Of a DNA stretch of 64,000 nucleotides, positions 56,092-64,000 are shown one piece after another; the stretch's first letter is position 1, and each line of letters starts with the position of its first letter. A program made the position numbers and the translations under genes. The DNA lies in NCBI GenBank assembly GCA_025594325.1, contig JANHCV010000002.1, positions 992,001-1,056,000 of the forward strand, given 5' to 3'. This DNA comes from Blastocladiella emersonii ATCC 22665. Lineage: Eukaryota > Fungi > Blastocladiomycota. The notes under the pieces are model-generated. The model did no database searches, was not told the origin of the DNA, and worked only from the letters and a program-made list of their open reading frames with translations.

Positions 56092-59000
56092 CTAGACACC
56101 AGCATCAGCGGCGACCGCGCCCGAGATGGACCGGCGCATCGCCTGCGCCTCGGCCTGGCTCGCCAGGATCTGCTGCTTCCTCCGGATCAGCGACGGGTCG
56201 TTGTCGAGCTCGTGCCGCAGCGCCGAATAGTCGCGGAGCACGGCCGAGCTCGTAGTGGACCGTCCCGTCGAGTTGGTTTGAGGCGTGTTGGTCGTCGCAC
56301 TCGTGCTCGACGTCGTGTTGGCCGCCGACCTTGGCACGCTGGTCGCGGCCGACGAGTCGGTCGAGGGCTGGTTCACGGCGCCGGCGCCGGCGATGGCTGA
56401 TGTGCTGCGACTAAACCGAGGAGCGGGTGTCGAGTCGGGCAGACCGCCCCCGCCCGAAGGGCCGCCCGACGAGTTGGTCGACGGTTCACTCGAGAGCGCC
56501 ACGGTCGGCAGCACTGGAAGCGCGGGCGACGGCCGCCGCGAGCTGCTGCTGCTGGTCGACGAGGCGAGCGAGTCCATTTGGGCCCGTGTCCGCGCGAACG
56601 CCGAGGCGAACATCGCCTCGACCTTGGAGCCGCCACTGGCGCTACTGCTACTGGTGGCGGGACCCGAGACGGTGGCAGCAAACTCGCGGCGACGGCGCTC
56701 GACGGCGAGGGACTGCAGCTGCGACTTGGCGGCCGCGAGTTCCGCGTCCTTGCGCTGGGCCCGCGCGCGCTCCTCCTTGAGCACCACGTCGAGCTTGTTG
56801 CGCTCGTTGCGCAGCGTCTCGACCTGCTTCTGGTACTTGCGGATCGTCGCCTCGCACTGCGAGTGGTCCACCTCGGGCGAGGCGAGCGGTGCCGGCTGCG
56901 AAAGCGGACCAGCCGAGTCCCTCGGCACCCTCGTGGATGCCGCCGTCACCTGCTTGGCGGCAGTCGCCTCGACGGCAGCGAGCCGCTCGAGCGTGGCCTC
57001 GTACCGCCCGCGCAGCTGGTCGAGCGAGCCCGTGAGCTGCACGATGCGGTGGTCGCGCATGCGGATCTCCATGTGCAGCTGGTCGACGGCGCCCTGCATG
57101 ACCTGCTGCGTCTCAGACTTGCCGTCGAGCTGGGCGAGCAACTTCTTGTAGTTGATCATGGTCTGCTGGCGGTCGTGGTCGGCCCGCCGCATCGACTCGT
57201 GCTGCTCGTGGACCTGCGACTGCAGCTGCTGGATCGTGGCCGTGAGCTGCGCGCGCTCGGCCGCAGCGTCCTCGAGCTCCGAGTTGAGCAGCTGGTTCTC
57301 CTTGATGAGCGACGTCAGGTCCGTCGCCACGTTGTTGACCTCGATCGTCATGTTCTACACGTACACCGTAAGTTCGCTACCCGCGGCCTGACACGCGGGA
57401 GACCATGATCGTACCTTCTTCTCGAGCTCGACCTCCTGCAGCTGCTGGTGCAACCGGTTGACCTGGGCGAGCCGCTGGCTGACGACGTTGTTGGCCTCGT
57501 TGAGGTGGCCCTGGAGCTGCGCGACCTCGGACCGCAGCTGGGCGGCCTCGGCGTGCAGGTGCTGGAGCTCGCCCGCGTCGCGGAGCAGGCGGTCGCCCGT
57601 CTTCTTGGCCTCAGCGAGCTCGTGCGCCTGCTGCTGCAGGATCGCGAGCTGCTGCTGGACCGTGGTGTTGACCTGGGTCAGCGACGACTGGAGGATCGCG
57701 ACCTGGCGCTCGGACGCGACGAGCTTGGCGTTGACCTCGCCGTACGCCGTGGCCTTGGCCTCCCAGTCGCGCGTGCGGTCGAGCAGCTGCGACAGCTCCT
57801 GCTGCAGGCGCGCCGACTCCTGCGCGTGCGCGAGGACCTCGAGCTGCTTGGCGGAGCACGATGAGCACGACGCAACGTGCTGCGGCGCGGGCTCGGCCGT
57901 CTGCGCGGACGCGTCGGCGGCGGGCGTGTCGGCGTCGCGGTCGAGCAGCTGGAGGTACAGGGACTCGAAGTTGTTGCGCTCCTCGACGACGGTGGCGATC
58001 TGCTGCGACAGCGTCTGCGTGGCCTCGTCGAGCGACCGCAGGTCGACGAGCAGCGCGTCGCGCGCCTCGGTCACCTGGCGCAGCTCGTCCGACGTGGCGT
58101 CGCGCGCGCGTTCGAGCTCGCGGATCCGGCCCATGTACGCCTGCATCTGGTCCTCGAGGTCCTGCTGGTCGGCCTTGAGCTTGTTGAGCTGGTTGAGCTG
58201 CGCGGTCGCCTCGCGCAGCTTCTCGCGAGTCTCGGCGAGCTCCCGCTCAATCGCCCACTGCACGACAGGTGGCGGATGCGAGGACGGCGGAGGAACGCCG
58301 GAAGTCGCCTCAGCGGCGGTCGGTGGTGGTGGTGACACCGGCGTGGACTCGGGCGCAGCTGGTGGTTGCTGAGTTGATGGCGCTGGTGGCGGAGCGGTAG
58401 TCGCAGGCGGAACCGTCGCAGGAACAGTGGCGGCGCTCGCGGCGGGTTGCGGATTCGAGGGCTTGGCGGCGAGGAGCTTCTCGTACTCGAGCGCCAGCTC
58501 CTCGTTCGTCTGGTTGGACGTCTTGAGCAGCTCGCGCAGGGCCTCGACTTCGTCGTAGACGGCCTGGTGCGAGAGGTAGTCCGAGTTTTCGCACAGGGCG
58601 AGGTAGCGCGCCTCGAGCTCGGCCAGCTCCCGCGTGAGGCGGGCGTTGTGATTGCGCGCCTCGTCTAGCTCGCGGTCGTTCGACTGACCCTTGTTCTCGA
58701 GTTTCTACGCGGTTGCGGAGGGTCAGCTCGACGCTGCGTACGACCCACGGACAGCATACACGCGCACCTGCTCGAGATCCTGGATTTGCTGCTGCAAAAA
58801 GTCGATCTGGGCCTCGAGGCGCTGCTCGCGGCCGGCGCGCTCCGGGTTCTTGGCCGACTGCATCAGCGACGAGAGGCGGTGGATCTCGGCCTCGCGGGTG
58901 CTCAGCTGCGCCTTGAGCTCGCCGATCTGCATCTCGAGGTCGGCGTTGCGCATCTCGAGGTCCTCGACCTGGGCGCGCTGCTCGCGGGCCTGCGCCTCGG

Positions 59001-59469
59001 CGAGCTTGACCATGTCGACAACGTACGGATCGACGAGCTGCGGGGCACGATTCGACGCCCACGCGGGGGTCTCGAGCGGCGCGAGCCCGCCCGCGGCGAG
59101 CTCGATGCGCTGGCCGGGGTCGCGGCCAATCGACTTGCCGCTGTCCCACAGCTTCCACGTGCGGAAGGCGTTGTCGATGCGGCGACGCTCATCGTCGAGG
59201 CGGCGCTGCTCGGCGCGGATACGCTCTGCGCTCTGCGACTGCAGGAACTGGCGCTCGTGCAGCTCGTTCTCGAGGCGGCGGATCACGGCGGCGGTCTTGC
59301 GCGCATGCTGGTCGTACTTGTCGGCCGAATCGATCAGCTTCTGGTGCAGCGCGTTGTTCTCGGACGACAGCCGCGCGTTCTCGCGGCGCAGGATCTGCAC
59401 GTCCGCGTCGAGCACATCGCCGTGCGGCATTTCTCGTCGGGCGCGCGCGCGAGCAATGAAGATCGGGGT
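56092..59469 (-). CDS. CEP135: Centriole/basal-body coiled-coil protein CEP135/Bld10 (5' exon unresolved)
   Basis: LRRENARLSSENNALHQKL..DQH, DPYVVDMVKLAE, LSTREAEIHRLS and LEAQIDFLQQQIQDLE resemble the CEP135 N-terminus (ENARLSRENNEL, DPYIADLLQVAD, REREIERLS, QVDFLQQANKDLE). Introns 58767-58705 and about 57412-57360. Confidence 0.8.
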
Positions 59470-59739: not shown

Positions 59740-61475
59740 TTAATGGTCGCTACTCGGTCGCGCAAGCTTCTGCTGCAGGGATATGAGCCTTGCCAGCGGC
59801 GGCTCAACAGTATGGCCGCTCGCTCTCGCCGGATCGGTCACATAGGGCTGATTTTCGACTTGTGCGGGTGACAGAAACTGAGGCATCGGCATAGTAGCTG
59901 CAGTTGGATACAGCGTTGGCGGCCAGGCAGGTGAAGGTCCGCCAGGGAACGACGCCTGGGCCGCGTTGTTGAAGTACAGGGGAGCGTAGGAGATGGTTTG
60001 CGTCCCGTAAAACTGAGGATGCGCCGGACTAAACGTCGGTTGCAGCGGGTCCGGTGGCGGGTGCGCGACGCCGGATACGCCAGCTGAAGTGCGAGGCAGC
60101 GGGCCAGGCATCGTATCGCACGCATCCCGCGTGGAGCGAGTCGGAGAACGGGACCGTGACCGCGTACGGCGATCCGAGGTCCGAAGCGACGATGATCCGG
60201 AATCACGGTTTGGCGATCGCCCAGGCGATCGCGCACGCGTCGAGGAGCGTCGTGTACGGTCTCGACTACGCGACCGCGAGCGCTCCCATGAAGAACGTGG
60301 TCGCGCCCGTGACGGGGATTGCCTGCGTGGGCGTGAAAGCGAACGCGAGCGGGAGCGAGAACGCGAGCGGGGTCGGCCACGACGCGACCCGCTCCGAGCA
60401 CGACCACGCGCGGGAGAGCGAGACCGCGACCGTACGCGAGCGCGGTGCTTCGATCGACGCAAAGAAGCGGGCGATTCGCGCTTAGAGTCACGAGCGACCA
60501 ACGACGCGGGCCCATCCCGGTTTGAAGACGACATCACCCACTTTGGGAGATAGTTTTTCGGAATGTTGAACCGCCCACTCAGGAGCTTTTTCGAGATATT
60601 GCTACACATAGTCGCAGCAGAATAAGCCAACCGGACGCGGATTGCGACAGCAAAGTAACGTACTGGCACGACCTATCCCAAGCAAATCTGACAGAAAGCT
60701 TACACTTGTCAATCAAGCAGCCCTCTGAAAGAAGCAAGTGGTAGGCGTCCTTAGAGTCGCTGACTGCCGAAAATTCGACGAGAAACGACCGCGAGCTAGT
60801 TTGGCGAACGGGTCAGCATCAACCGCGTCAGAGAGAAATGCGATGAAACGCGTACCCCGCATGCGAGGGCTCGGTGAGCTCCTCAAAAAGATACAGTCGC
60901 CCGCGTCGGGCCAGCCTTCGTTCGAGATTTCGGTCGAGATCAGGTGGAAACCAGTCTGAAGTTGTGACCGTGATATGGAGGGAAGCACAACCATGGGCGT
61001 CGTTTGGGCGGGGTGTAAGCGATGGGGCCGCTGCGGAAGGCATGCTGTAGAAAACGATCGGCCGAGTTTGGCCGACCATCTTGCCCCTAAGCCGTTCAAA
61101 CGAGGCGATCGCTTCGTAGATGTCTCCCTAGCGAGTTTTTGCACAGCGGGGATAAGTAAGCGCGCGGATCCTCTTGGTTTTTCGTCGGGAGTAGCGTACA
61201 TAGTTCACAAAAATACAATGCTCGCCAGGCGCTCCAAGAAAGACAACGATGCGACCTGTCCCAATATATGGACGTAATTGCAGTCGAATGTCTTTTTTGC
61301 GCAAGGAATTCGGGATGCCGCGGATGCAAAATGCGCGTGCGGGCGGGAGGCTCTCGACGGTGAGCACCTCGTTCTCGTCAACCACTTCACCGGCCTCGGG
61401 TGCACGACTCAGTCCCGGACTCGTCACCGGGTCCGGAGGAGGCTCATCCATTCGTTGCATAGAGTTGGAATTCAT
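59740..61475 (-). CDS. RRM-RRM-RS protein, copy A; exons 61475-61200, 61127-60856, 60795-60664, 60601-59740 (513 aa)
   Basis: Canonical GT-AG introns give an open frame: RAFCIRGIP..CIFVNY/GDIYEAI..; SRSFLVEF..AWDRSC; long RS-dipeptide tract. Confidence 0.8.
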
Positions 61476-61771
61476 GGTAGGGCCTGGTCACGGTCGACGG
61501 TTGTGTCGACGGGGAAGCGTCCGCGCCTCGCGACGCCGGCGTGACTGCTTAGATCCCGATGCACGTGAGTCGCGTGCGACTGAGCGACGCTTTTCTTCCG
61601 CCTCGCTCGGTCGACAGCGCGAGCAGCATTTCGGGCGTGCACCGCCGTGCAAAGGCCTTTCGCTCGACAGTAAACGGGAGTTCACTCTCGCTCTGAAGAC
61701 GCTCAAGGGCGAACGATTGACTGCAGTGTGGTGCTGTGCGATGTATTCGAGTCGAACAAACACAGCGGAGA

Positions 61772-63329
61772 TCAATGGCCACGCCCGGTCCCCATCAGCC
61801 TCCGCTGCAGGGCGAGGAGCCGCGGAATGCGCAGTGCAGTGTTCTCCTCGCTCGTACCAGACAGTGAGGACGTCGCGGAAAGATCAAGAGCTTCCGCGGC
61901 GGGCGGCGGGGCAGGCAGGAGCGGCGTTGGAGCAGCAGGTGGAAGCTCCGCCGTTTGCCGGCCGAGGATGGTGCCGACTAGGTCGGAGGAAGCCGAGGCG
62001 CCGCCAGCGTCCACATGCTCCTCACGATGCGCGCGAGAGGGCGTCTGTGAGCGCGACCAACCACGATCCGAGACCTGGCTGGAAGGGGAAACTCGGTTGT
62101 TCGTGTTGGCCGACGGCCGTGTGAGCGACTGTGGTAGGGCAAGGTCCAACACCGAGTCACAACCAATTTGAGCTTGATCTCGCGAAAGCGACCGTGGGCG
62201 AGTTGGAGAGCGGGAGCGGGAGCGGGAGCGGGGCCGATTGTGATCGGACCGATCCAGGGTGCAAGCAGGACGGTGCGCGTGAACATGCGGCTGTGGCCGA
62301 GACTGTGTGGCCAGTGCGTCGGGGCCCACGGGTAGAAGAACGTCTTGCTGTTGCTTGAGGAACTGACGCGCCCACTTTGGAAGAAAGCGGTGAGGAATGT
62401 CAAAGCGTCCGCTGGTCAGTTTCTTTGAAACAAGGCTACGGTGCGTTTTACTCGAGTGAGTGAGGCTTTTCAAGCGATGGCAGTAGTGATCAAGCGGTAC
62501 TAGCAAGACCGGTCCCAAGCCCTCTCAACACGGAGCGTGCAGCGCTCCAATGTGCGCTTCCCCGTGAAAATCAGGTCGTAAGCTGTCTTGGAGTCGCTCA
62601 CTCTGCAGTAATCGACATGGAAGGACCGCGAGCTTCATTGACAAACGTCTCAGCAAATGGACGCATCGTCGAACGATAATACTGAAAGAATGTGCGCCAT
62701 TGAGATGTCAGTTCCGCAACCTCGAAGAACTCGTAGATTGGTCCAATTTCGCGCAGCCCTCGGCCAAGCACGTTAAAAAGTTCGCAAGGGAATTCGCTTG
62801 AAGTCGTCGCCGTGATACAAAGCAACGCGACGCCAGGGACATCGTCTGAGCGCGGGGTCATCAAATGAACATTAGCGCACGGCATGCTGTAGAATACGAC
62901 AAGCTTCGGTTGCCCAGCGATTGCACCCTTCACCCTCGCGAAACACTCCATGGCGATGCAAATGTCAGCCTAGGATTCACCGAAGGCACCGTCAGCGCGC
63001 ATTCATGGATCCTGCGATCAAGAAGGCTCGAGGTACTGATGGCTTACGTAGTTGACAAAGACGCAGCGCACTCCGCAGTCGGCCGTGTGCACAACGATGC
63101 GCCCCGAGCCCACATGCGGACCGAGAAACCTCATGATTTCCTCGTCGCTCGTGGAGCGCGAGAACCCACGAAAGCTGAAGGCGCGTGCAGGTGGAAGGTT
63201 CTCGATCGTGAGGACGCCGTCGTCGGCATCAGGGGCGTCGTCGCCAGCGTTTGGCCCAGGACTCGGTTTCGGTTCAGCCAACGAGATCGAAAGCGTCTTA
63301 TTCATTGGTTGCATAGAGTGTGGTTTCAT
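61772..63329 (-). CDS. RRM-RRM-RS protein, copy B; exons 63329-63048, 62969-62698, 62632-62501, 62435-61772 (449 aa)
   Basis: Exon 2 (272 nt) and exon 3 (132 nt) have the same lengths as in copy A; the motifs are colinear. Confidence 0.78.
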
Positions 63330-63526
63330 GAGCGCGAGTAAATAGTGTTTCGCGTGGAGTGGAGGTGCTTGAGTCGAGTCCAGGAGCATGTCTCAAACCG
63401 TGAACTCTGATCGACTCACGGGCGAGCGCGAGTTGTATCGGCGCGCTACGACGCGTCTCGGATCAGACGGACAGCAGCTAAGCGAGATCGAAACAACAAC
63501 GCTGATATATCTAATGAACCTCTGGC

Positions 63527-64000
63527 TCACGAGACGTGTCCAGTCCCGGCGAGCCTCCGTTGCAGGGCCAGCAACCTTGAAGGAAGCTCCTGCAATAGAG
63601 CAGGTGCTTGATTTGGATAGGACGGGCCCCGCGCGAGATGTACGAGCTCGTTCGGCAAGGCTGGTCGATGTGCAGTAGCGAGAGGCAGAGCCACCTTGGT
63701 TGAGTCGGCGGAATGCGCCGCTGGCCACGGCGCGTGCTGCTGAAGTCCTGGCCATGCGAGCGGGTAGCCGTTTGGATCAGCGTGCGAGTGCGGCTGGCTC
63801 GAGTTGCTAGAAGGAAGCAAGGAAGGTAGAAAGGGCTGAGCAGCAGCAGGGTCGGCGTGAGACGGTGTCAATGCAGGGCACAGGGACGTCGAGCGAGAGT
63901 CCTGGAGCTCGGGCGGTGCCGCGTTTGGCGCGGGAGTGCGCGCGGAAGCCGGCTCCGTCTTCGCGTCGTCGGAGGAGACCCGACGATGGCGCAAACGAGA
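63527..64000 (-). CDS. RRM-RS family copy C (3' part only; runs beyond the window)
   Basis: Ends in RLLALQRRLAGTG, like copy B (RLLALQRRLMGTG) and copy A (RLISLQQKL). Confidence 0.65.
   Translation of the reverse strand, partial: SRLRHRRVSSDDAKTEPASARTPAPNAAPPELQDSRSTSLCPALTPSHADPAAAQPFLPSLLPSSNSSQPHSHADPNGYPLAWPGLQQHAPWPAAHSADSTKVALPLATAHRPALPNELVHLARGPSYPNQAPALLQELPSRLLALQRRLAGTGHVS

Follow-up and report, generated by a model that had tools for sequence, protein, structure and literature searches.

What are the genes at the right-hand end of a 64,000-nucleotide stretch of DNA from Blastocladiella emersonii ATCC 22665 (contig JANHCV010000002.1, positions 992,001 to 1,056,000; the window), where three minus-strand open reading frames end at window positions 59740, 61772 and 63527? 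B. emersonii is an early-diverging fungus with stress-sensitive splicing and serves as a model for zoospore biology. A preliminary description of the window had read these three same-strand units as a tandem array of at least three fast-evolving genes for serine/arginine-rich (SR)-like proteins, each with two folds of the RNA recognition motif (RRM) type and an arginine/serine (RS) tract. From the analysis described here we conclude, with moderate confidence, that the units belong to a tandem array of six genes whose products make up an orphan SR-like family of B. emersonii, for which no relative was found in the collections searched.

The assembly searched comprises 21 contigs and 32.65 Mb; the published genome of the species has 21 contigs, 34.27 Mb and 10,031 genes, annotated by funannotate (PMC9730499). 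In the following, C11 denotes the contig holding the window (C11:992001-1056000). When exon 1 or exon 2 of copy A, which lies wholly within the window, was compared with the whole assembly, six sites were matched, all on C11 between 1,052,858 and 1,064,067, on one strand, at a spacing of about 2.1 kb and with E-values from 1e-18 to 2e-4. As the exons resemble each other at E-values of 1e-18 to 1e-5 and nothing else in the genome matches, the similarity reflects paralogy and not chance. The six paralogs, A to F, form one same-strand tandem array of about 12.7 kb in all, and neither the exon searches nor a family profile search, which matched the array locus only, revealed a further copy in the 21 contigs. 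Copies A and B and the 3' end of C lie inside the window, while the rest of C and the copies D, E and F were found beyond it, so the array is larger than the minimum of three proposed from the window. The sequence details given in the preliminary description were all recovered. A seventh copy past F was considered and rejected, the next gene being COQ7-like (C11:1066332-1067573, minus strand); this gene borders the array. The array has a G+C content of 0.57-0.61 compared with 0.65-0.75 in its flanks, in agreement with the low-GC tract described earlier. G+C at third codon positions (GC3) is 0.60 in A, 0.65 in B, 0.68 in C, 0.73 in D, 0.83 in E and 0.71 in F; it thus climbs from A to E, a compositional gradient inside one paralog family (array C11:1051740-1064067).

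Each gene model has four exons, and exons were kept separate throughout, searches being made with exon pieces, with a stop-free read-through frame of copy E, or with the public protein model of that copy. Intron phases are 0, 2 and 2 in copies A and B, whose intron positions had been called identical, and the exon alignment extends the three positions and phases to all copies from A to F. Except for exon 1 of copy F, the exon pieces are open and can be aligned with invariant positions. The 132-nt exon said to complete the second domain is present in A and B and encodes SRSF...SDSK.AY...AWDRSC (Table 1). The 17 introns across the array measure 58-89 nt, 16 of them have GT..AG ends, mostly with GTACG(C/T) donors and YAG acceptors, and 11 carry a CTGAC or CTAAC branch box 16-39 nt upstream of the acceptor. 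These features match the published profile of B. emersonii introns, most of which are 60-79 nt long, with GT-AG ends in 102 of 105 and a CTAAC-like branch site (PMC2773782). Similar signals (GTATGT...CTGAC...TAG, about 62 nt) were seen in a control intron of the adjoining COQ7-like gene, located after ..HYNE. The only exception among the 17 is intron 2 of copy B (window 62633-62697), which is without a clean GT donor and could either start at a GTATTA donor 14 bases further downstream or be of the GC-AG type, with AAG as acceptor; the open frame there runs on for 34 codons beyond the expected end of exon 2. In copy F, exon 1 is interrupted by an insertion, changes frame and lacks the intron-1 donor, so that the first domain of this copy is not intact (C11:1064070-1064400). 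An ATG within exon 2 of copy F could yield a protein without domain 1.

Copy E corresponds to the public protein H9P43_002284 (P0001; 466 amino acids), and the three junctions inferred for copy E by homology are all junctions of this model. An intron-less copy E was rejected, as its 537-amino-acid open frame reads through two in-frame introns. By means of two extra introns (C11:1060763-1061136), P0001 drops about 125 codons of an open, in-frame RS tract and carries in its place a mini-exon of 19-21 residues from another frame. As no stop interrupts the frame in this part and an RS tract is kept in every paralog, the removal in P0001 is probably a gene-prediction artefact. Neither phmmer with P0001 nor a word search that took exons 2 and 3 from every copy as its seed returned a public protein for A to D or F; within the length limits of these methods, a public model seems to exist for copy E alone.

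An 11-base element, ACTYYATGCAA, is found at the 5' end of copies A to E (Table 1 and C11:1057359, 1060020 and 1062271), where none is expected from shuffled windows. Copies A and B start with M-x3-SMQ-x-M, as had been described, and in A to C the ATG-CAA of the element supplies the Met and Gln of SMQ. The position differs in D and E, where the element falls upstream or in a different frame. The element may be a start-site or 5'-untranslated-region signal rather than coding sequence.

Divergence was counted over 164-256 aligned codons of the conserved part, summed by exon class. Amino-acid identity among the copies is 27-46%, A, B and C being mutually closest (39-46%) and D, E and F more distant (33-37%). 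Differences at synonymous sites have reached saturation (proportion pS, 0.57-0.79), and the ratios of nonsynonymous to synonymous divergence (dN/dS) obtained by the method of Nei and Gojobori are roughly 0.15-0.6 where computable. Given saturated synonymous sites and dN/dS below 1, the copies are best regarded as old duplicates with constrained cores, and the term fast-evolving is not borne out. The same applies to part of the proposal of a lineage-specific, duplicated and diversifying family: duplication is evident and no relative was detected, but the aligned codons suggest that the cores look constrained, and positive selection is unsupported.

The predicted protein plan consists of an N-terminal tail, a semi-canonical RRM-type domain, a linker, a pseudo-RRM, a probably helical motif, a disordered RS tract and a variable tail. 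Ribonucleoprotein (RNP) positions were read from the six-copy alignment together with the predicted strands. In domain 1, beta3 follows the pattern x-x-[CRW]-[IVA]-F-[VAS]-x-[YF], with the Phe of RNP1 position 5 kept by each of the five intact copies; C, S or R occupies RNP2 position 2, and RNP1 position 3 is aromatic in D only. None of the three RNP positions of domain 2 holds a conserved aromatic residue, and this domain is therefore called a pseudo-RRM. Conservation also extends outside the usual RRM marks, to an RNP2-like L(T/R).(E/K).(L/M)PP(A/S)R immediately before beta1 of domain 1, to the linker Y.MP...TP...GVAS and to AWD..C, which closes domain 2. After domain 2, all six copies have the motif K...G.F.I....LP.W, predicted to be helical with low to middling confidence. 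The last exon of A and B begins accordingly with (S/T)KK(L/I).SGRF.IP...LP(K/R)W, the motif reported earlier, followed by the RS tract and a Pro-rich tail. The variable tails are rich in Pro, Gln and Ala and often closed by a short Leu-rich motif, which near the C-terminus of A, B and C takes the form RL(L/I)(A/S)LQ(R/Q)(R/K)L, realized as RLISLQQKL or RLLALQRRL in accordance with the preliminary description.

By the rule that Manley and Krainer are said to have set out in 2010, an SR protein has one or two N-terminal RRMs and an RS domain of at least 50 amino acids whose RS content exceeds 40% and which includes consecutive RS/SR repeats. In the best 50-amino-acid window of copies A, C, D, E and F, 50-62% of residues are in RS/SR dipeptides and 68-76% are R or S, and the tracts of these copies contain alternating runs of 6-12 amino acids. 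Five of the six copies thus have an RS domain of the kind that the rule describes, and copy B, with 32% in RS/SR dipeptides, falls short. As to the RRMs, none is recognized at the sequence level by Pfam RRM_1, and by predicted fold both domains agree with one, with the caveat that ACT domains superpose on domain 2 equally well.

Structures were predicted with AlphaFold2 for P0001, with exon pieces of the paralogs as alignment rows. As MAFFT misaligns mixed exon fragments, two separate alignments were used in two runs, one of exons 2 and 3 (A2) and the other of exon 1 and the motif (A3), these being the only sets that align correctly to P0001. Both domains were modelled with the RRM-like order beta-alpha-beta-beta-alpha-beta. 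With A2, domain 1 comprises strands 33-40, 59-66, 69-76 and 100-104 and helices 45-55 and 79-89, and domain 2 comprises strands 122-130, 154-160, 169-175 and 195-203 and helices 140-149 and 178-188. The predicted local distance difference test (pLDDT) was about 88-93 for domain 1 (residues 33-104) with A3 and about 74-87 for domain 2 (residues 122-203) with A2. In the models the fold of both domains is ferredoxin-like. Foldseek comparison of both P0001 models with the PDB returned tandem-RRM proteins almost exclusively among the matches listed, first SFPQ, NONO and PSPC1 (E-values 1.3e-8 to 1e-5) and then DND1, HuR, HuD, U2AF65, Pub1, Sxl and Npl3; the top matches listed in the two runs have E-values of 1.3e-8 to 1e-6. 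With VIA-align, each domain superposed on many RRMs with Z-scores of 8.5-9.8, and IMP3 RRM12 was matched over 148-153 residues with Z-scores of 9.4-9.8. Like the generic tandem-RRM proteins (HuR/HuD, Sxl, U2AF65 RRM1-2, IMP3 RRM12, Pub1), the predicted proteins have two ferredoxin-like domains joined by a short linker; however, the former keep the RNP1 and RNP2 aromatics and are recognized by Pfam, whereas the array family does neither.

Searches at the sequence level named no family. When P0001 was compared by phmmer with 1.84 billion representative proteins, it returned itself alone, and a word search with the copy-E read-through frame also found P0001 alone. A word search with alignment A2 again gave P0001 alone among 8000 candidates, a weak negative, as the candidates were probably filled by the low-complexity tail. 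No match was obtained in a word search with the tail of copy A, in a metagenome pattern scan with exon 1 of A, B and C, or in a viral scan, and PDB sequence searches gave no significant match. Below threshold, the family profile aligned with CIRBP (E 0.62-0.8) and RRM2 of U2AF65 (E 1.6-1.8), in both cases in register with helix 1, beta2, beta3, helix 2 and beta4 of domain 2. In a protein-language-model comparison, every one of the closest clusters was an RRM family, with a best score of 0.89; we treat this as a lead only. No search run revealed clear orthology to a known conserved RRM factor. As no sequence model sees an RRM, the RRM-type assignment is a prediction that draws on modelled structure; it is preferred not from structure alone but because of the Foldseek ranking, the tandem arrangement, the weak in-register sequence matches and the RS tail.

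Several observations weigh against the reading as an orphan SR-like family. Pfam at E<=10 assigned no family to exon pieces, read-through frames or P0001 and detected no RRM, and most RNP aromatics are missing from the alignment, so that binding of RNA is not assured. The alignments used for folding held the six paralogs only, and the mean pLDDT of the whole models was 56-59. ACT domains, which share the ferredoxin-like fold, fit domain 2 no less well than RRMs (Z 9.1-9.8, root mean square deviation 2.0-2.4). Of the earlier proposal of two RRM folds followed by an RS tract, the tract is thus upheld by the residue counts and the fold by AlphaFold2 and Foldseek, but the specific identification as RRM is qualified by the silence of the sequence models and by the ACT superposition. 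In addition, just copy E among the six is present in the public protein collections searched, saturation of synonymous sites makes the dN/dS figures rough, and the gene models of A to F, together with their splicing and transcription, are predictions from DNA.

These points bear differently on the other explanations. The genes might descend from a very diverged canonical two-RRM SR protein of the SRSF1, Srp2 or Npl3 type and so be lineage-specific duplicates rather than an orphan family. Two-RRM SR proteins (SRSF1, SRSF4, SRSF5, SRSF6 and SRSF9, Srp2 from S. pombe, and the SR-like Npl3) have, in the same order, an N-terminal RRM-type domain, a degenerate second RRM and an RS tract, and RRMs of Npl3 and SRSF6 are among the fold matches. 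In contrast to them, the array family gives no RRM_1 match and has no detectable sequence homology, no SR protein having been returned among the 1.84 billion proteins. The SWQDLKD signature is absent from the six-copy alignment, as had been noted for the copies in the window, and helix 1 of domain 2 reads P.DL...L...L...G, with W and Q not conserved. Furthermore, the family profile matches no other gene in its own genome, and the conserved linker and post-domain motif, foreign to SR proteins, are accompanied by a long low-complexity tail. Descent from a canonical SR protein is therefore considered unlikely, though worth keeping in view.

Alternatively, the two domains could be protein- or ligand-binding ferredoxin-like modules, UHM-like or ACT-like, which do not bind RNA, so that the RS tail alone would direct the proteins to nuclear bodies. 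The RNP aromatics, one of three in domain 1 and none in domain 2, would suit such modules, as would the equal fit of ACT domains to domain 2 and the basic-Trp LP[KR]W past domain 2, which loosely recalls UHM ligand motifs. However, Pfam finds no ACT domain in P0001, and ACT domains are known from metabolic enzymes and regulators, whereas this is an RS-tailed eukaryotic protein. Foldseek lists a single ACT-bearing chain (an aspartokinase, rank 48) in one run and none in the other, and neither domain conserves, in the six-copy alignment, the hallmarks of a UHM, namely an acidic helix A and, ahead of beta4, an R-X-F loop. We consider this explanation improbable.

A silent or decaying array, in which the paralogs would be pseudogenes or untranscribed and the locus an accessory low-GC island, appears more doubtful still. 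It would account for the finding of copy E alone in the public protein collections searched, for the broken first domain of copy F, for the non-canonical intron 2 and weak RS tract of copy B, and for a GC3 that is low for the genome in A to C. Against this, all other exon pieces are open, GT-AG ends are kept in 16 of 17 introns with conserved phases, and invariant residues survive saturated synonymous divergence at dN/dS below 1. Decay to a pseudogene fits copy F alone, and perhaps copy B.

Kinship with the DBHS proteins (SFPQ, NONO and PSPC1), which would imply RRM1, a non-canonical RRM2 and a NOPS-like helical piece for obligate dimerization, is very improbable. These proteins resemble the array family in having a canonical-like RRM1, an atypical RRM2 and helices past RRM2, and they are the first Foldseek matches of both models over 231-245 alignment columns that extend beyond domain 2. 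However, the TM-scores are 0.14-0.29 and the root mean square deviations 16-20 A, which means that the spatial arrangement is not shared. Pfam NOPS does not match P0001 at E<=10, model confidence is low past domain 2 and, to our knowledge, DBHS proteins have no RS tract and are found in animals only. An origin from Mei2-like proteins was rejected: the likeness is a short beta1 resemblance (IRGIP versus IRNIP), hhalign gave a probability of 0.8% for the family profile against the Mei2 gene of this genome, and a whole-genome scan with RRM_2 (PF04059) matched contig C1 only, with no RRM_2 in the array. The single Mei2-like gene of the genome lies at C1:3051934-3055224 (RRM_2, 147-152 bits) in a 957-amino-acid open frame.

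Returning to the orphan SR-like family, an architecture of the SR or SR-related type makes a nuclear role most likely, and from it we infer a role in splicing or RNA regulation. In such a role, the RRM pair would contact either RNA or, with its degenerate faces, a partner protein. Kinases of the SRPK/CLK type would probably phosphorylate the RS tail, which would recruit the protein to splicing or other messenger ribonucleoprotein (mRNP) assemblies. Differences in partners or localization among the paralogs may come from their variable tails and from the Leu-rich motif at the C-terminus. The array probably grew by stepwise tandem duplication long ago, with purifying selection on the cores while the tails drifted. 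In a bolder form, to which we assign a low probability, the family would be a true orphan of Blastocladiella or its close kin, an SR-like module that was elaborated independently and has six members at work in RNA biology particular to the lineage. Candidate roles would then lie in the zoospore nuclear cap, where untranslated mRNA and ribosomes are stored, or in stress-induced splicing arrest, and the linker together with K...G.F.I....LP.W would be a new partner- or RNA-binding surface. A global arrest of splicing upon stress has been described in B. emersonii (PMC2773782).

The array adds to B. emersonii a lineage-restricted, tandemly expanded set of RS-tailed proteins with predicted double RRMs, and concrete gene models are now provided, five of the six genes being absent from the public protein collections searched. 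If the proteins are splicing or mRNP regulators, they would exemplify an SR-like architecture built on RRMs that have drifted past sequence recognition; if they are not, they would represent an ordinary fast-turnover gene family in an accessory low-GC island. The features within the window are compiled in Table 1.

Table 1. Features of copies A, B and C of the array, in window positions.
Feature	Position	Strand	Basis or remark
Copy A, whole gene, four exons, about 511 codons	59740..61475	-	Open reading frames, in-frame exon translation, paralog matches
A exon 1: N-terminal tail, LT.E.LPP.R motif, beta1-alpha1-beta2-beta3 of domain 1	61200..61475	-	Secondary structure by homology to P0001 models
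A exon 1 end: ..FVNY, then GTACGC donor, phase 0	61200..61475	-
A exon 2: alpha2-beta4 of domain 1, linker Y.MP...TP...GVAS, first half of domain 2	60856..61127	-	Phase-2 GTACGC donor
A exon 3, 132 nt: beta3-alpha2-beta4 of domain 2, ending AWDRSC	60664..60795	-
A exon 4: post-domain motif, RS tract, Pro-rich tail, C-terminal motif, stop	59740..60601	-
A conserved motif NISKKLLSGRFNIPKNYLPKW	60529..60600	-	Six-copy alignment; predicted helical in P0001
A RS-rich tract; best 50-amino-acid window 56% in RS/SR dipeptides, 74% R+S	60112..60486	-
A C-terminal motif RLISLQQKL	59764..59790	-
ACTCTATGCAA element, start of copy A	61455..61465	-	Repeated at 63309-63319 in B
Copy B, whole gene	61772..63329	-	Alternative in-frame upstream ATG at 63389 possible
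B exon 1	63048..63329	-	..FVNY at its end, then GTAAGC donor
B exon 2	62698..62969	-	3' end uncertain: GC donor 62697 or GT donor 62683
B exon 3, 132 nt	62501..62632	-
B exon 4	61772..62435	-	Motif 62363-62434, short RS tract 62165-62266, RLLALQRRL 61796-61822
Copy C, 3' part of last exon	63527..64000	-	Gene continues to C11:1057354, outside the window
C C-terminal motif RLLALQRRL	63551-63577	-

Directly downstream of copy A, three long minus-strand open reading frames at window positions 56092-59430 encode sequences that are rich in Ala, Gln and Ser and coiled-coil-like.

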